Positions 10,994 to 52,110 of a stretch of 64,000 nucleotides of DNA are shown here, piece after piece. The notes under the pieces were generated by a model that was not told the origin of the DNA, made no database searches, and was given only the letters and a program-made list of their open reading frames with translations. Position 1 is the stretch's first letter. Each line of letters starts with the position of its first letter. The stretch lies in the NCBI GenBank assembly GCA_964188305.1, contig OZ076895.1; one strand, given 5' to 3'. A program made the position numbers and the translations under genes. This DNA is from Podarcis bocagei (taxonomy: Eukaryota).

Positions 10994-12549
10994 GACGCCG
11001 TATGATTTGGAATGTTAGCCCCAGCAACAAAAGTGGTATATATAAGAAATTGGTTAATTTTTATGAAAGAATTAAGGTTTAAATGGGTAAAAATGACAAT
11101 ATGTTATATTTTAAGAGTAAATGGAAAACAAGAGATTTAAACTTAAACTGCAATTGAAAGTAAAAAAGAAACACATGAAACAAGGTTATAATTTGCTGAT
11201 AATTTTATTGTTAAGAATGCATTATGCGGGAGATGTGGGGAAGTCCGATAGAATTCTGAAATAAGTTGATGAAATGGTTGAGATTCTCTGTTTTTTTTCT
11301 TTCTTTTTACTGTCTATGTTCTTTCTTTTCTATCTGTAATTTGGAAAAAACGCAATAAAAATTATATAGAAGACCATTCCAGAAGCGGGAGTGCCATTGG
11401 GTGGCATGTTAAGTGTGGGATTGAAGTGCTTTGGTGGGAGAATGTTGCCATATGTGAAATGGCCCTTAAGTGCTGTAACTTCATTGCTATTCTTCTGTCC
11501 TCTCTATGAGAAAATGAGTTAACTTTAGGTGTATCCAGAATTTTTCCAGAAAACCAGTATATATATATAAAAAAAGATACAGGAGGTAAGTGGCAAGATA
11601 AGGCTGATGCAGTTGCTTATCGCATACCAGCTTCTTTTCCATATTTGTTCTAAGAAGGTATGGGACCCATTTGAGCTCTTGGGGTTAATTCTTAATGACT
11701 GGCAAGTCTTCCAACGTCCAGTTAGCCAAATCCTCAGTTAGCACTTGTGTCCATTTTTTGAATGAGAAACTCTACCAATTTGGGGAAAATGCTAAAGGTG
11801 CTTCCTCCCTTTCTTTTACAGAACTTTTCGTGTATGGCTGAAGAAAGACAGTGGTCAGTATTGACCTAACACATACCACCCACTGACTTGTAAGTATTTG
11901 CAATACTTGGTCCATTTTAATTCTCATCTTTCAGGCCCACTCCTCACTTTTTCTTCATCAGCACTTCCACCAATAATTAGCTGTTGAGAGTACAGTGTGG
12001 ACCTTCCATAATTCTGATGGCATTTAAATACATTGAACATTTTTAAACAAGGGATTCTGGTGTGTGGCAAATATAAACAATGTGACACCCATGTTACTGG
12101 ACTCCATATTTCTGCATGTGCGTTAACCCAGAAACAAGAAAGCTGTCTGTCGGTCCAGATTTATAGAAGCCATTGTGACACCTTCCTCTGCTGGCTCACT
12201 GGTCACCAGAGTGCTAAAAGACCTGGTGGGCTCCTACGGTTGGATCATTTCATCTGTGTGAGAGAAAGGAGATGGAAATGTAAGTAGGATTTCTCTCAGC
12301 ATCTGAATTTTGTGATGATAGTGAATTCCTCTTGAGCATAGATGTGTGAATGCCAAAACCAGTTTAGGGACAGGAGAGCACATTTTTCTCTTTCTTTTCT
12401 AGGCTTTCAAGGCTGAGGAAAGTGTTATCCCGGTTGGGAAGGTGAAGTAAGATTTCGCCTCTCCCTGAGACCTCCCTCTCACCCACAACATTCTGTACCC
12501 CTCTTTCAGAGGACAGAAAGGGTAAAACCCTTCAGCATATAGATGTTGC

Positions 12550-13146
12550 TGTGATGCACCGGATCCTTTGCCTCAGGCATCATCTGAACCAAGTCTGGGG
12601 CCTGATCCTGAGGATTCCCAGTCTGCACAGGTTCCCCTTCAACAAACACCAGCTGGGCCAAGTCAGGGGCATGAGCCTACCCTGGCTCCAGATGCGGGGA
12701 TTACCAAACCGGTAGTGCCTTCAGCTGGGCCATCACTTACAGCTGCTCCACTACCGGTTTGGTCAGGGGAGGCTGAGGCGGTTCCTGGGTCTAGTAAGCC
12801 ACCAACGTCTCCCGAACTGCAGAGACTAAGGTCTAAGAGAAGGAGACACCTGAGTACTCGCAGGAGGAGTGCTCGCCTTCAGGCGAAACAGGGAGGTGAG
12901 TCGCCGGGGGATCTGGACTGGCCGCTACCCCGATAAAGATAAAAGGCTGTCGGACCCTGCCCCAGGTTGCAGGAGCAACATTGCTGTATGCTAGATCCTG
13001 CCTGAGATCCTGTACCTGTCCTTGCTCTTGCTTGGTTTCCTGCCTCGTGTCCTGCCTTGGCCCTGTCGGACTAACTCCCAGCAGAACCTTCGGATTCTGG
13101 ACCGGCCCTGGACTGTACTTCACGGGTTACCCCCAGGCCCAGCACA
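12550..13146 (+). mobile_element. Solo LTR (597 bp, probably Ty3/Gypsy)
   Basis: TGTG...CACA termini, perfect 5-bp TSD GTTGC (12545-12549, 13147-13151) and a TATA-like GATAAAA at 12938. Confidence 0.85.
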
Positions 13147-13780
13147 GTTGCTTCCATAGTCATATTAGTCCCTAAGGTTTCTTAAGAAAGGTCTCTCTGT
13201 AACTGTCTGAGGCCTAGTTCGAGGTTCTGAAAAATAAAAATATCCCATGTAGCTCTTTGTTTCCCTGTAGGCTCTGCATACCTCCTGCCAGAAGGGGATG
13301 GCCCAGGAAAAAATAACGGTAATGTCTATTTCCAAATATATGTTCAGTGTATATAAGAAAGTCCCCCAAGCAGTTCTAATTGCTAGGCTTCTCTTCTTTT
13401 CCATTTAGATGACATAGTCCTAGAAGACCTGGAGGGAGAGCAGGGGCCCATTTTCTGTGAGCAGCAGGACAGCTCTGGAAGAAGATGGTGGAAGAGCTCC
13501 TCCGTCAGAGGAGCTCAAGAAATGCCCAAGAAAACATGAAGACAATGTCTATTTCCAAGGATATGTTCAGTGTATATAAGAAAGTCTCTAAAACACCTAG
13601 TCAATGTCTTCCCTGCTAGGGTGAGAAGCGCCGCATTTCCATTATGCTAATTATTTCTAAACTTGCATGTGTGCATTGAAATTAGCATATGCAAATCTGT
13701 CCCCCCATTTGGCCACCCTGATATCCTCTCTTCTTTCTCTTCCAATAAAAAATTCAGAAACAATTAGCCTAAGCCAAATA

Positions 13781-14454: not shown

Positions 14455-16965
14455 TTAGAGGATTTTTCATAAAAGAAAATGCCCATCAAAGGAAAATAAA
14501 AGAAAGGAAATCTGGGAAGAAATACAAAGAAATGAAAAAGAATTACTTAATAAACCAGACAATGAAAACATTAAACAATATAAAAATCCTTCAAACACAA
14601 TTCTCAGTGGTAATAAATGAAGAGCTGGAATGGAAGATCAAATGGCTAAAATAAAAACATTTTTAATTCGGAAATAAGCCGGGCAAACTCTTGGCCTGGC
14701 AACTAAAGAAAAAAATGAGATGAAAGATTAATAAAATCAGAATGGATGATAAATGGTCTGATGATCCAAAGGAAATCAGTAGATGTTTTGCCAATTACTA
14801 CAGAGTTACACAAAGAGGGGTCCGAAAAAAGTGAAAAAAATGCAGAATATTTGAAGACGAATGGACTGCCTAAGATCTCAAAAGAGAAATCCAGGATATT
14901 AAACTCTCCCATTGCCCCTTTAGAGGTACAAGCAATTCAAAGAGCAAAAATATTATCAATTTTAAAATTTAAAAAATGATAAAAAGAAAGGAGGTGCGAC
15001 GGAGATTTCAAAATTTGAATCCGACCTGGTAAACTCTAAGACCAAAACTCTTTATAAAACATACAGACTCCTCCTTGACTGGGAAGTCAAGGAAGAGGAG
15101 GTCAAATCAGCAATGATTAAATGGACTCAAGCCTTTGGCCACAACATAGACATGAGCCAATGGGAACACCTATGGAAAGTTAATTGGAAATTTGCAGCAT
15201 ATTTTACGCTAAGGGAAAACCTCCAAAAGATGCTATATTGATGGTATTTAACCCCCTGTAAACTTTCCAAAATGTACAAAAATGTTCCAAATACATGCTG
15301 GAGATGTGGAGAACCAGGTGGAACTCTCTTCCACATATGGTGGGTGTGTAAAAAGTTTAAGACCTTTTGGAATGATATATAGAGAGAGCTCAAAACAATG
15401 TTAAATGTATCCTTACTGAAGAAACCAGAATCATTTTTATTGGGCATTACAGGTCCAGACATTGTTAGGAAGATAAAAGTCTTTCTGTATGCCACCATTG
15501 CCGCAAGGGTATTTATAGCAAAACATTGGAAGAGTGACAAAATTCCTACTAAATCTGAACGGTTACTAAAGCTGGTAGAATATGCTGAATTAGACAGTCT
15601 CTCAGAAAAGATCAAAGATAAGTCAAAACAGGAGTTCATTTCAAACTGGGAACTTCTAAGGAGATATTTGAAGGATAATTGTTGCAATCTGAAATCATTA
15701 GCAGCCTTTGAGTAATCTCTGTGAGTAATACAGATTAAAAGGGAGAAAACAGATTTACACCGTATTTTTCGCCCCATAAGACGCACCGGCCCATAAGACG
15801 CACCTAGATTTTAGGGGGGGAAATAAAGGAAAAAAAATGTATTTCCCCCCCAGGTGCGCTGCACTAATCCAGAAGCTTGGGGCAAGCTGAGGTCAGCGCG
15901 CCCCAAGCTTCTGCGTGCCGGCAAGCAGTCCGCTGCCGCCCCAAGCCTCCCGCACCCGGCAGGAGGTCCCGCTGGGTGCGCAAGGCTTGGGGCGGCAGCG
16001 GACTGCTTGCGCGCACCTAGAAGCTTGGGGCGTGCTGAGCTCAGCACGCCCCAAGCTTCTGCATGCCGGCAAGCAGTCCGCTGCTGCCCCAAGCCTCCCG
16101 CACCCGGCAGGAGGTCCCGCCGGGTGCGCAAGGCTTGGGGCGGCAGCGGACTGCTTGCGCGCACCGAGAAGCTTGGGGCCAGCTGAGCTCAGCACGCCCC
16201 AAGCTTCTGCATGCCGGCAAGCAGTCCGCTGCCGCCCCAAGCCTCCCGCACCCGGCAGGAGGTCCCGCTGGGTGCGCAAGGCTTGGGGCGGCAGCGGACT
16301 GCTTGCGCGCACCGAGAAGCTTGGGGCCAGCTGAGCTCAGCCCGCCCCAAGCTTCTAGGTGCGCGCAAGCAGTCCGCTGCCGCCCCAAGCCTCGCGCACC
16401 CAGCGGGACCTCCTGCCGGGTGCGGGAGGCTTGGGGCGGCAGCGGACTGCTTGCGCGCACCGAGAAGCTTGGGGCGGGCTGAGCTCAGCTGGCCCCAAGC
16501 TTCTCGGTGCGCGCAAGCAGTCCGCTGCCGCCCCAAGCCTCGCGCACCCGGTGGGACCTCCTGCCGGGTGCGCGAGGCTTGCAGACACTCGCCCGAAGCA
16601 GGGGGAGCCCTCCAGAGGGCTCCCCGTGCTTCGGGCGACAGGCTGCCGCCCCAAGCCTCGCGCACCCGGTCGGACCTCCTGCCGGGCGCGTGAGGCTTGC
16701 AGGCATTCGCCCCATAAGACGCACCCCGATTTCCCCTTCATTTTTGGAGGGGAAAAAGTGCGTCTTATGGGGCGAAAAATACGGTATATAGGTTTATCAG
16801 AGTGGAAAAATTGGGAAAGGATGGGAAGTCAATCTTATGTACTAAATATATTATAGAAGGACTTGTACTTTTTTATTTTTATTTTTGACAAAACTGACAC
16901 GTAAAATAAGGAAGATATGTCTTTGATGTAGATGCAAGTATGAACAAAAAAGCAATTTTTTTAAA
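14455..16965 (+). mobile_element. Degraded L1: ORF2 linker and C-terminus with the RT domain deleted, plus 3'UTR interrupted by a MITE
   Basis: IRGFFIKEN...EELEWKIKW...GKLLAWQLKK aligns with the intact L1. It then jumps at about 14945 to KSAMIKW...CWRC..HIWWVC..KKPESFLLG (stop 15715). Stops and frameshifts are present. Confidence 0.88.
15760..16784. mobile_element. Tc2-like (TcMar) non-autonomous element with 148-bp hairpin-repeat interior
   Basis: TIRs CCGTATTTTTCGCCCCATAAGACGCAC at both ends, TA at the right flank and CA at the left. The internal repeat has period 148. Confidence 0.85.
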
Positions 16966-37826: not shown

Positions 37827-37873
37827 TATTCAGAAAAATGTATAATAGGTTTACAATTATGTAAATTCACATA

Positions 37874-38115
37874 CAGTGGTACCTCGGGTTACATACGCTT
37901 CAGGTTACATACACTTCAGGTTACGGACTCCGCTAACCCAGAAATATTACCTCGGGTTAAGAACTTTGCTTCAGGATGAGAACAGAAATCGTGCTCTGGC
38001 GGCGCGGCAGCAGCAGGAGGCCCCATTAGCTAAAGTGGTGCTTCAGGTTAAGAACAGTTTCAGGTTAAGAACGGATCTCCAGAACGAATTAAGTACTTAA
38101 CCCGAGGTACCACTG
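37874..38115. mobile_element. Tigger/pogo-like MITE (family A)
   Basis: Same TIRs and TA TSD as 213-454. Confidence 0.9.
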
Positions 38116-39755
38116 TACTTTGAGGCCCCAAATGAAGTTCCCAGATGAGGGTTATCCTTTTGTAACTAGCAAGGGGTAAGGAGAAGGAGCCAAGCTACCT
38201 GTAGGCCAGCACTGTTGGAGATCACTCAACTTGAGACTTGTGAGACAACCACACTTTCAACTGCAGCTTCAGACAGTCATCTCGGTGTTGGTTGGCCTGG
38301 AGAATAAGCAGCAAGGGCAAAGTGCAGATAGTGTAAATAATCCAAGTGAAGGCTCAGAATTTGTTTTTCTTCCCACCTGACAATCTTACCCAGTTTTGGG
38401 TTTTTGCTGTCTTTGTAGCAAATTCTTCTTCTTATGCTCTGTGGTTGTTTGTGGGGGTTTATTTTTACATTTTCATTTCTCATAACTAGAGTGGACCTCA
38501 GACTGGAACCATAGTTAAAAGTAAGCAGAGGTGGGTGCCTTTTTGATGTTCCCACTTTCTTGGGCATATTGTAATTAATTAATTATTCATCCATGAAGTG
38601 CCAGTTGAAGAAGGTTACTTAAAGAGCTACGTTATCTTTTCAAAGCTATTTCTCATTCAAAATTCCAGTTTCTGAACTTTTCTTTGGCCTATTAGGAAGA
38701 ATAATTATTTACCAATTTAGCCATGAATCTTTCTAGTAAATAAAAATGTACCTCTGCTTTAACAGAATTCTGCTGCCTGTTTTAGGTTCCCATTTCCTGC
38801 TCTAGCAATTCTATGGGGCCATTCAGGATTCACTCATTTTTCTGTTTCAGCAGTTTTAGACTTTATTAGCCACTGAAGTAACACTTTATTCCCCTGGAAC
38901 TTGTTTGGCTTTTGGGCTGCAGCTTCAAATGTCAACCATTAGATCCCTCCCATTTTTCTTTTACTCTGTAATGTTGCAGACTCTCTTCTTGCAGCAACTG
39001 GCTTCAAGTTGCCTGTAAATCCAGCCCACCCCCAACAGCAACAGCTGTGTTATCCTAAGTCCAATATCTGCCTTGTCATCCTTTCCTGTCTTTCTATACT
39101 GTGAATAACTAAGACCATTTGCGGGGGGGCGGGGATCATAACAGATATTTAAAGTGAGGAATTTTGTAAGTTTCAAATTTAGCCAGGCCCCTGCATCTTA
39201 CTTTGGACCCACAGGAAGGTCTTTCCCTCTCAGTAGTCATTTCTTCAATACTTGAGATCACTGTAGGAAATAATTCTGTGGCTGCAATCCTGTGTCACAT
39301 ATCTAGGAGTATACCCCACTGAACTCATGGGGACTTCTGAATATATGTGTATAGGATTACAGTGTAAAGGAATAAAAGTAAAAAAAAACAGGAGGTGTTC
39401 CTGGACAACTTTACAGAAAATTTAAAGGTAAGTTGCCAGTTTTCCGTCTATTTCATTTTAATTTGGAGCGGTGAGGGAGGGAGTGTAAGTGTTACACACA
39501 CAACCCTAGCTAGCTATTCCCTCTTCCTGCCAGAGCTCCTTGTGCCCCACCCGAAGGTGTTCCTGAAGGACTGAGGATCCTCCAGAGCAATATTCCAGGG
39601 GCTTTAGCTATAAAGATAAATCAGCCCCGAGTATATTTCACGTAGGCTCTTCGGATTCCAGAAAATGATTTTCAAGCCAAATAACACATGTGAACCTTTA
39701 GGGTTATTGGAGGAGGATTTTCAGTTTGTGAAGCCCTGCTAGAGTTTACAAGCAG

Positions 39756-42521: not shown

Positions 42522-42739
42522 CAGTGGTATCTCGGGTTACATACGCTTCAGGTTACAGACTCCGCTAACCCAGAAATAGTACCTCGGGTTAAGAACTTTG
42601 CGTCAGGATGAGAACAGAAATCGTGCTCCGGTGGCAGCAGGAGGCCCCATTAGCTAAAGTGGTGCTTCAGGTTAAGAACAGTTTCAGGTTAAGAACGGAC
42701 CTCCGGAATGAATTAAGTACTTAACCCAAGGTACCACTG
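42522..42739. mobile_element. Tigger/pogo-like MITE (family A)
   Basis: Same TIRs and TA TSD, with small internal deletions. Confidence 0.88.
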
Positions 42740-43775
42740 TATCTTGCGGCAATTTAAAGACCAAGTTAATTAAATGACTAATAGCCCATCATAAAGACAT
42801 CTCTGGCTGCAGTTCTAACCCTGTCTACTAAGAGGCAAGTCCCATTGAATTAAAAAATGGGGGAAATGATCTCTTGAGCCAAATGTTAATCCCATGAGCC
42901 ATACCTCTGGCCAGAGGTTCTCTACCCCTGTTTCAGGGAATGGGTAGTAGCCAAAAAGTAGCAGTTGAATTCAGTTGGTTCTTCCTGCTTTACTAAAGAG
43001 CTTTGGAATGTAACTGAGGAGTACAGATAAAGTCTACAGGTAACAAAAGAGATAACTTCTTTCCATTTGAAAATAGCAATAATGAACAATGCAGTTCATT
43101 GGTTTTTAAAATTCAAGTAGAAACAAATTAAGGCCTCAATCCTAATTCCACTTACTTGGAGCCCATCATTGAATACAATGAGGTTTATTTCTGAGTAGAC
43201 ATGGGTCAGTTACAAGACATGGGGCTTGAAAGATAAATTACTCTAAATTATTTTTATTATAAATTAATTTCCTTGTAGTCATGGGTGGTAAGTAGATGCA
43301 GGCTTCTCCTATATGATGGCACAATTTGTTTGATTAAATCACTAATATTTTAATGCTAAATGTATTATAGGGCTACATGCTCATCCTACTTCCAGGCTGC
43401 TTGCATCTGACACACTTAAGGCACATATGCCTACTTTTGTTATTTTGTAATCAGGATGCTATAAGTTTTTATCAGTCTATTGATTGAAGTCTATTGATTG
43501 TTATGGATAATAATAATAGTGGATAATGGATAGGTGAAAAATTCCACCGCTTGGGCTAGATAACCACCAACTGTAATCTTCTGCATGTCTACTGACAAGT
43601 AATTCTTTGAATTCAATTTGGCTTACTCTCAGGTAACAGTCAGAAGGCTTACAGCCTAAAATATTTTTTAAAATACACCGCACCTTTCCATTACCTTGGG
43701 TGAAGTTTCATAATGATAACTTTAATTGTCATTAATGAGCAGCTAAAAAGTAACATGTATTTGGCTTATACAGAC

Positions 43776-44776: not shown

Positions 44777-45275
44777 TCCACCTATCTGACTGTGTTTCCC
44801 CAGCCACTCTGGGTGGCTTACAACATATATAAAAAATTGTAAAACATCAGACATAAAAAATTTCCTGATACAGTGGTACCTCGGATTAAGTACTTTATTC
44901 GTTCCACTGCGCCGCCGGGGCACGATTTCTGTTCTCATCCTGAAGCAAAGTTCTTAACCTGAAGCATTATTTCTGGGTTAGCTGAGTCTGTAACCTGAAG
45001 CATATGTAACCTGAAGCGTATGTAACCTTCAGATTGTCTTCTAAAGGTCAGTTGTTTATTTCCTTGACATCTGATGGGAGGGCACTACTGAGAAGGCACT
45101 CTGCCTGGTTCCCTGTAACTTCACTTCTTGCAGTGAGGGAACCGCCAGAAGGCCCTCGGAGCTGGACCTCAGTGTCCAGGATGAACAATGGGGATGGAGA
45201 CGCTCCTTTAGGTATACTGGACCGAGGCCATTTAGGGCTTTAAAGGTCAGCACCAGCACTTTGAATTGTGCTCAG
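44725..45275 (-). mobile_element. L2 LINE 3' fragment with (AAT)n tail, interrupted by a truncated family-A MITE (44871-45027)
   Basis: Minus strand LVLTFKALNGLGPVYLKERL...TLRSS..LLAVP..AFSV is the L2 ORF2 C-terminus. (TTA)n lies at 44725-44775. Confidence 0.85.
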
Positions 45276-50974: not shown

Positions 50975-52110
50975 TATCTTGCACCTAGGCCTCACCAGTA
51001 GTGAGGAACTGATCAACAAAGTGGAAGTACAGTGAACATTGAGAGGAAACAATAATATCCTCTTGGGTTTCATTAGATAGAGGCAAGGGAAACCTGAGTA
51101 TCGTTGGACTTGCACTGCGGACTTTAAGAAGGCTGATTTCCTTAACAAACTTGAGGAACTACTGTGTGAGATCCCACTATACAGTGATACCTCAGGTTAC
51201 ATACATTTCAGGTTACATACGCTTCAGGTTACAGACTCTGCTAACCCAGAAATAGTGCTTCAGGTTAAGAACTTTGCTTCAGGATGAGAACAGAATTCGT
51301 GCTCTGGCGGCTCAGTGGCAGCAGCAGCAGGAGGCCCCATTAACTAAAGTGGTGCTTCAGGTTAAGAACAGTTTCAGGTTAAGAACAGACCTCCGGAACG
51401 AATTAAGTACTTAACCTGAGGTACCACTGTATGTCAGAAATACTCAAAGAGAAGGAAGTCCAAGATGGATGGAAGTTTCTTAAAGGTGAAATATTGAAGG
51501 CACAAATGCAGATGACTCTAACAAGAAAGAAAAATGGGAGGCATTTGTTGGTAAACATTTTTATAAACAACTTGGATAATGAAACTGAGAAGATGATCAT
51601 CAAATTTGCGGATGACACCCAAACTGGGAGAGGTATCTAATGCTGTAGAAGTATTGAAGACAGAATCAGGATTGGAGATTACCTTAACAGAATGGAGAAC
51701 TGGGCCCAAACTGCCAAAATGAAATTCAATAGGGATAAATGTAAGGTTCTACACTTAGACAGGAGGAACGAGCTGCACAAATATAAGATGGGGGACACCT
51801 GGTCTGGGTGTAGCACATAAGAAAAGGTCTAGGGGTTTTAGTAGACTACAAGCTTAGCAGTCAACAGTGTAATGTAGCAGCAAAGAAGCTAATGCTATTC
51901 TAGATTGCATCAACAGAAATATAGTGTCCCAATCATGGGAATGTCATAGTACTGCTCTATTCTGCCTTGATCAGACCACACCTGGAGTAATGTGTTCAGT
52001 TCTGAGCATCACAATTTAAGAAAGATCTTGACAAGCTGGAACGTGTGCAGAGGAGGCAACCAGTATGATCAAACATCTGGAAACCAAGCCTTCAGTATGT
52101 TTCACCTGGA
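50975..52110 (+). mobile_element. CR1 LINE ORF2 fragment, internally deleted, with family-A MITE inserted
   Basis: DFKKADF..L.ELL.EIP / SEILKEKEVQDGW.FLK.EILKAQ / NIFINNLD..IIKFADDT..G / FNRDKCKVLHL. Confidence 0.88.
51182..51429. mobile_element. Tigger/pogo-like MITE (family A)
   Basis: TA|CAGTGATACCTCAGG ... CCTGAGGTACCACTG|TA. Confidence 0.88.

Follow-up and report, generated by a model that had tools for sequence, protein, structure and literature searches.

The choice of integration site by retroelements depends largely on tethers of the integrase: lentiviruses use LEDGF, gammaretroviruses BET proteins, Ty5 Sir4, and chromoviruses chromodomains. Short arginine anchors on the H2A-H2B acidic patch are known from the chromatin-binding sequence of foamy virus Gag and from the N-terminus of KSHV LANA. 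In Ty3 of yeast, the POL3 frame ends inside the downstream LTR. In plants, centromeric chromoviruses of CRM clade group A carry an LTR-encoded CR motif on the integrase in the place of the chromodomain (Neumann et al. 2011, PMC3059260). HMGN2 grips the acidic patch with R23 and R26, located within RRSARLSA (PMC12487698), and HMGN-like motifs have been found in tardigrade Dsup and yeast Dot5 (PMC12487698; bioRxiv 10.64898/2026.01.14.699602). The cryo-EM paper on the HMGN motif speaks of an "untapped realm" of acidic-patch binders (PMC12487698).

Here, we analysed a solo LTR in a 64-kb stretch of DNA (the window, meaning the whole stretch) and compared it with related squamate elements, in which the LTR appears to encode an integrase tail. 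The parallel with CRM drawn in the initial annotation holds for the architecture, as the integrase C-terminus is encoded by the 3' LTR in both, but not for the module: the CR motif replaces the chromodomain, whereas the squamate elements keep a canonical chromodomain with the tail added after it. The hosts also differ (plant versus vertebrate), and the CR motif and the squamate tail do not appear to be alike in sequence. As in Ty3, the polypurine tract and the beginning of the 3' LTR lie within the pol frame; the Ty3 overlap, however, comprises a few codons with no known module, whereas the squamate overlap covers 70-140 residues that are under selection. By analogy with foamy virus Gag and KSHV LANA, the squamate tail may present an arginine-anchor peptide on a flexible region that tethers the integrating complex, although in those viruses the motif lies in Gag or LANA, not in an integrase, and is not LTR-encoded. 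Our literature search returned no vertebrate report of an LTR-encoded integrase tail, vertebrate chromoviruses included, and nothing combining retrotransposon integrase, the acidic patch, and HMGN.

Results

The window contains a solo LTR

A 597-bp unit that begins with TGTG and ends with CACA was recognized by sequence inspection on the plus strand, with GTTGC present on both sides as a 5-bp target-site duplication (Table 1). When contigs of three related species were aligned to the window, the summed depth was several-hundred-fold higher exactly between 12550 and 13146, and the LTR family is repeated hundreds- to thousands-fold in related lizards. No second copy of the LTR was detected within the 64-kb window, and gag and pol were absent beside it. 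Based on the target duplication, the multi-copy edges, and the lack of adjoining gag/pol, the unit was assigned as a solo LTR. Contigs joining 12544/12545 to 13147/13148 with 5-6 shared letters were also obtained and correspond to an empty site, as the 602 skipped letters equal 597 plus 5. The flank of the LTR is a low-copy repeat (13301-13372 and 13524-13595 form an 83% duplicate, 223 bp apart, where contigs "go back" by 220-227); because the flank is itself repeated, the empty-site contigs may stem from paralogous copies and not from an allele. A highly repeated element has thus inserted here with duplication of 5 bp and persists as a solo LTR, and its termini, duplication, depth edges, and empty-site contigs bear out the earlier designation.

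The same LTR sits at the orthologous site in Podarcis muralis (locus L001), which is collinear with the window at 90-97% identity and represents the orthologous region of a close relative. Two other repeats were noted in the window. Four tandem 148-bp units at 15860-16600 are G+C-rich, and the unit is at the same time an inverted repeat of itself, with 88-95% complementary arms of up to 328 nt. An interspersed, SINE-like repeat of ~250 bp occurs in both orientations with copies 83-96% alike, and is present in L001 too.

Table 1. Positions of the LTR, its coding remnant, and neighbouring features in the window
Feature	Position	Strand	Evidence
SINE-like repeat copies	206-457, 2240-2494, 37872-38126, 42532-42750, 44904-45028, 51180-51440	both orientations	sequence likeness
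Target duplication, left copy GTTGC	12545-12549		sequence and empty-site contigs
Solo LTR, 597 bp, TGTG..CACA, lacertid chromovirus family A	12550-13146	+	termini, depth edges, P. muralis orthologue
Apparent remnant of LTR-encoded integrase tail frame, 128 codons and stop	12550-12936	+	open frame, dN/dS, relatives
Site of missing 46 bp (tail codons 2-16, M-A-W-D-W-D...)	12554-12555	+	orthologue alignment, loose ends at 12555
Basic block LQRLRSKRRRHLSTRRRSARLQAK, best conserved part of the tail; predicted helix in orthologue	12817-12888	+	copy comparison, AlphaFold2
RRRSARLQAK codons, HMGN-like core; 18 nt for RRSARL identical in 5/5 lacertid LTRs	12859-12888	+	alignment
GTGAGT splice donor of P. 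muralis model LOC114604991; not kept in family B	12896-12901	+	gene model, alignment
Stop codon(s) in TATA-like TAAAGATAAAAG; GATAAAAG invariant in families A and B, ends coding U3	12934-12945	+	alignment
Block conserved between LTR families, ~20-45 nt past TATA-like box	12960-12989	+	alignment
Target duplication, right copy GTTGC	13147-13151		sequence and empty-site contigs

The U3 frame is truncated in the window copy

The initial annotation had described a 128-codon frame that is open from the first LTR base, has no in-frame ATG, and stops just before a TATA-like box. The 128 open codons followed by TAA are real, with a chance of ~1% per frame by base composition (58% G+C), but the frame does not begin at the first LTR base: in the window, openness extends upstream to 12526, and the true start is base 2. 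Alignment with the P. muralis orthologue revealed that 46 bp are missing from the window copy immediately downstream of TGTGA. Loose contig ends were observed at 12555 in all four mapping runs, indicating that the bulk of the family carries the 46 bp. The P. muralis LTR opens with TGTG-ATG-GCC-TGG-GAC and encodes M-A-W-D-W-D-S-G-S-E-P-E-E-T-Q-S, then A-P-D-P-L-P-Q, the latter being the effective beginning of the window's frame. In intact copies, the frame runs from LTR base 2 and reads V-M-A-W-D, with the ATG at bases 5-7. The opening from base 1 and the missing ATG are therefore by-products of the 46-bp deletion, and both are peculiar to the window copy.

At the other end, the window's stop falls inside the TATA-like GATAAAGATAAAAGG. 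Most copies have C at 12934, and the family stop is a TAA inside GATAAAAG, two codons further on. The conserved block beyond the box is likely to be the start-site region. The codons of the reported RRSARL motif were confirmed and read RRRSARLQAK. With no pol attached, 46 bp missing at the 5' end, and neutral drift since insertion, the window copy is an inert relic.

The frame shows the substitution pattern of coding sequence

A second solo LTR was found in L001 (12942-13671, minus strand, duplication CAGAA). It is alignable to the window LTR only over ~200 bp, at 69% identity, and was assigned to a sister lacertid LTR group; hereafter, the window's group is called family A and the sister group family B. 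This family-B insertion is specific to P. muralis, and the window species has an empty site at 15426-15431. The family-B frame in L001 is open, starting with M-A-W-D-S-E-S-E and ending with L-Q-R-L-R-A-E-R-R-R-E-L-V-S-P-R-R-S-A-R-L-K-A-K.

We then compared dN/dS in all three frames of lacertid LTR pairs by Nei-Gojobori counts, a comparison that the initial annotation had proposed together with that of frame conservation. Between diverged copies, dN/dS was 0.18-0.37 in the tail frame and 1.2-1.7 in the others. For two family-B LTRs, the value was 0.37 in the tail frame versus 1.4-1.5 in the other two, with 16 synonymous and 18 non-synonymous differences distributed 8/7/19 by codon position (Fisher p 0.006). 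The comparison of family A with family B gave 0.18-0.25 in the tail frame versus 1.2-1.7. The orthologous solo-LTR pair of the window and P. muralis gave 0.69 versus 1.05-1.48 elsewhere (9/8/12 by codon position); this pair is near neutral because it has diverged only since insertion. Arginine codons of L-Q-R-L-R-x-E-R-R-R carried synonymous changes between families A and B. Taken together, the substitution counts indicate that the LTR frame is under purifying selection and that U3 is coding up to the TATA-like box.

The 18 nt for RRSARL (12862-12879 in the window) and one preceding base were identical in 5/5 lacertid LTRs, and nearby synonymous sites vary. This nucleotide identity may reflect an added DNA- or RNA-level constraint on the RRSARL codons.

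In full-length relatives, pol enters the 3' LTR

The closest annotated pol fragments were those of the gecko Heteronotia binoei; no lacertid pol model was returned with the RT query, and exact-pattern scans of metagenome and viral contigs gave no match. A complete family-B element was present in Podarcis lilfordi (L002, 9997-15638), with the duplication CATAG and LTRs 99.4% identical. It contains Gag (PF03732, DUF4939), PR, RT, RH, IN, a chromodomain (14719-14993), the polypurine tract GGGAGGGGGATGG, and the LTR. Further Gypsy copies in L003 and L004 were too decayed for their pol ends to be read.

The read-through of pol across the polypurine tract and into the 3' LTR, as proposed in the initial annotation, was observed at 4 of 6 junctions. 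In L004 (H. binoei), where the LTRs are 100% identical, a 1229-codon open pol frame enters the 3' LTR by ~220 nt and encodes, in order, the chromodomain, G-G-P-G-G-G-D-S, and V-M-G-A-G-D-P-S-E-E, with R-R-R-A-A-R-S-Q-A-R-R-S-L-S-P-E-F at the tail end. In L005 (Gekko japonicus; LTR pair 99.3%), pol is in frame with the LTR and the tail has 111 residues. The junction is also in frame in L006 from the rattlesnake Crotalus adamanteus (LTR pair 95%), where the tail is decayed. The fourth case is P0006, a P. muralis Ensembl model known as protein only, in which the chromodomain (PF00385, E 5e-15) is followed by P-G-P-D-P-R-L-R-G-G-P-G-R-G-D-G-V and directly by M-A-W-E-S-D-S-E; we infer that it is an uncorrected transcript-based model.

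The frames were not joined in L002 and L003. In L002, the one lacertid copy compared as DNA, the chromodomain frame closes at a TGA formed from LTR bases 3-5, and the tail frame is one position off; this copy weighs little against fusion because its gag-pol carries at least seven frameshifts. In L003, a second H. binoei copy (LTR pair 98.8-100%), pol ends at the border of the LTR, whose tail frame is open but in a different register. Both differ from the fused copies at the polypurine G-run, which is 10 long in L004 (12840-12890) versus 8 in L003 (42015-42060) and also deviates in L002 (14975-15000). This variation could be plain decay or a variable switch. Judged from the junctions, the U3 coding sequence of full-length relatives is a C-terminal continuation of the integrase past the chromodomain. 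A junction of this kind would also be expected in family A, as the first 15 nucleotides of its LTR and the frame are identical.

Regarding classification, Ty3-type Gag domains (PF03732, PF19259, and PF16297) were detected in P. muralis Ensembl models P0003-P0005, the RT/RH/IN order was established by a tblastn map of L002, and the chromodomain was found at the integrase C-terminus in family B and in the gecko and snake relatives. The same LTR flanking gag-pol was seen for sister family B (L002). The best hits of the RT search were named RTL1, PEG10, and Gypsy integrase-like, and the placement by RT follows these best-hit names. PEG10 and RTL1 derive from the Sushi-ichi/Tf1-sushi group. The PF03732/DUF4939 Gag, the RTL1/PEG10-like RT, the integrase chromodomain, the size of ~5.6 kb, and the 5-bp duplication resemble this group, and the window LTR probably comes from a Sushi-like retrotransposon, that is, a vertebrate chromodomain-bearing Ty3/Gypsy element. 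The squamate elements differ from that group in their LTR-encoded integrase tail, of which no description was found for it in the searchable literature, where absence is no proof. A tRNA-type primer binding site was not evident past the 5' LTR in L002 (10637-10700, GTTTGCTCCCGCC...) or L004 (8552-8590, GATTGCTTCCACC...). Self-priming is reported for the Tf1/sushi group, which fits the lack of an evident site of this type.

The tail has a conserved layout and an arginine core

Tails of lacertids, geckos, and the snake were compared. They are 70-140 residues long, and all have an acidic first third that begins with a Ser/Asp/Glu stretch, a neutral, Pro-rich middle that forms a Pro/Ser/Ala-rich linker, and a basic last third. 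V-M was present at the LTR start in 7/7 lineages compared, and the ATG there is flanked by G at positions -3 and +4. The core R-x-x-A-R-x-x-A-[RK] in the basic block is kept in lizards and geckos and partly in the decayed snake copy. In lacertids, it reads RRSARL[QK]A[KR] (family A, RRSARLQA; family B, RRSARLKA), and RRSARL was invariant in all lacertid copies compared. Geckos have RRAARS or RQNARM in the place of RRSARL with the R-x-x-A-R spacing retained. A gecko tail and the family-A tail were 45% identical over 33 residues (pairwise E 1e-5), with R-R-A-A-R-S-Q-A-R opposite R-R-S-A-R-L-Q-A-K.

The lacertid core matches 7/8 positions of RRSARLSA, both contact arginines included. By contrast, the Lys/Pro-rich DNA-contact stretch of HMGN is absent after the core, where QGG or RGG is found instead, and no Pfam profile matched the tail at E up to 10, the HMGN profile (HMG14_17) included. 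A search of PDB sequences at E up to 10 also gave no match. AlphaFold2 with a seven-sequence alignment returned pLDDT 52-60 except for a confident helix at residues 101-127, corresponding to the basic block. The flexible, anchor-bearing tail suggested earlier thus agrees with the model as far as the low-pLDDT Pro/Ser/Ala-rich linker is concerned, whereas the basic block is drawn as a helix and the HMGN core takes an extended form. AlphaFold 3 models the interaction between HMGN and the acidic patch poorly (PMC12487698). The tail is a candidate nucleosome anchor by its resemblance to HMGN over 6-8 residues, and it may bind the acidic patch, a possibility that we entertain seriously while considering the opposite more likely.

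The LTR frame has entered gene models

A word search with the translated frame returned one protein, the NCBI "uncharacterized protein LOC114604991" of P. muralis. This model (L001:10001-14293, window 12550-13623) starts at LTR bases 5-7, uses the donor GTGAGT at window position 12896, and continues through exons at ~13270-13318 and 13409-13623. We read it as exonisation of the solo LTR or over-prediction and not as a conserved gene. A donor following the motif was considered as part of the element design and rejected, since GTGAGT is not conserved in family B. A full HMMER search and a second word search showed that the frame is contained in a few gene models of P. muralis and P. lilfordi; with the tail as query, the full HMMER search yielded just two representatives. 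Both are P. muralis models, one derived from the LTR and the other combining LTR and Gag.

An N-terminal extension of Gag by the LTR frame, as drawn in P0003-P0005, was also rejected. The three models make the join at three different points, off GT donors; in L002, Gag actually begins, with M-A-D-Q-A-A, downstream of the 5' LTR, and in every case the LTR frame is closed by a stop at the TATA-like box. We take these LTR-Gag joins to be model artefacts. In P. lilfordi model P0007 (L002:10001-34873), the LTR ATG is joined to exons of a family-C receptor gene (ANF_receptor domain). With U3 coding, thousands of solo LTRs offer an ATG-initiated open frame to gene predictors, and the NCBI and Ensembl models are examples.

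Discussion

We propose that the pol frame of squamate Sushi-like elements passes the integrase chromodomain without a stop and continues via a Gly-rich polypurine tract into the 3' LTR, where most of U3 (in lacertids, up to the TATA-like box) would encode an integrase tail of 70-140 residues. The tail may aid the integration complex in engaging chromatin. The likeliest route would be through an arginine anchor that engages the H2A-H2B acidic patch and complements the chromodomain; nuclear import would be possible too. As a whole, this explanation (a dead solo LTR in the window, an LTR-encoded integrase tail in its relatives, and a role in chromatin) seems to us probable, with good if incomplete confidence.

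The principal alternative concerns what the basic block does. It might serve the integrase as a nuclear localisation signal or as an arginine-rich helix that binds nucleic acids, with the HMGN likeness being coincidental. Ty1 integrase has a C-terminal import signal, and the KRRR and RRR clusters of the tail fit classical import signals. The confident AlphaFold2 helix across the entire basic block, the gecko tails that retain arginines and not RRSARL, and the lack of an HMGN profile match are in line with this view. On the other hand, RRSARL is invariant in every lacertid copy amid varying neighbours, and the R-x-x-A-R spacing of the two HMGN contact arginines (PMC12487698) is kept from geckos to lacertids. 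An import signal and an acidic-patch anchor are also not mutually exclusive. We regard this alternative as possible, though doubtful.

A more elaborate form of our proposal is that the integrase is a two-part nucleosome reader, with the chromodomain for a histone tail mark and the LTR-encoded, HMGN-like arginine anchor for the acidic patch, and that the length of the polypurine G-run decides whether the tail is present, either between copies or by homopolymer slippage. We consider this version unlikely.

Still less probable is that the U3 frame forms an accessory gene of its own, outside the integrase, with translation starting at the ATG of LTR bases 5-7. The V-M and flanking G residues shared by the seven lineages would suit such a start, as would the overlap of the L002 pol stop with the LTR ATG and the end of the L003 pol just before the LTR. 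However, the LTR terminus is under constraint in any case, being the site that integrase recognizes, and the in-frame junctions include that of a copy with identical LTRs and an intact pol. Furthermore, with 5 kb between cap and frame, translation would depend on a subgenomic RNA or on reinitiation, and no sign of either was seen.

That the window frame is a host gene exon, orthologous to P. muralis LOC114604991, is very improbable: XP_077791896/7 do include the LTR frame plus two exons downstream of it, both found in the window as well, but in the window copy the region of the start codon is missing and the last exon is interrupted by an in-frame stop, the dN/dS of the orthologue pair is indistinguishable from neutral, protein word and HMMER searches found no homologues beyond LTR copies, and the splice joint is absent among the joints listed for one RNA run. 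We likewise give scarcely any credence to an open frame arising incidentally from conserved, non-coding signals of a G+C-rich U3, since this idea, which could draw on the chance of openness at 58% G+C and on the nucleotide-level conservation of the RRSARL codons and the TATA region, is largely refuted by the third-position excess and the frame-specific low dN/dS, and the frame is open in 4/5 lacertid LTRs as well as three further squamate lineages, where the charge layout agrees although the DNA is unalignable.

An integrase module encoded in an LTR has its precedent in plant CRM elements, and the squamate version, which is under selection, is common to lacertids, geckos, and one snake. If the tail binds nucleosomes, it would exemplify mimicry of a vertebrate chromatin protein by a mobile element and would provide a compact natural tether.
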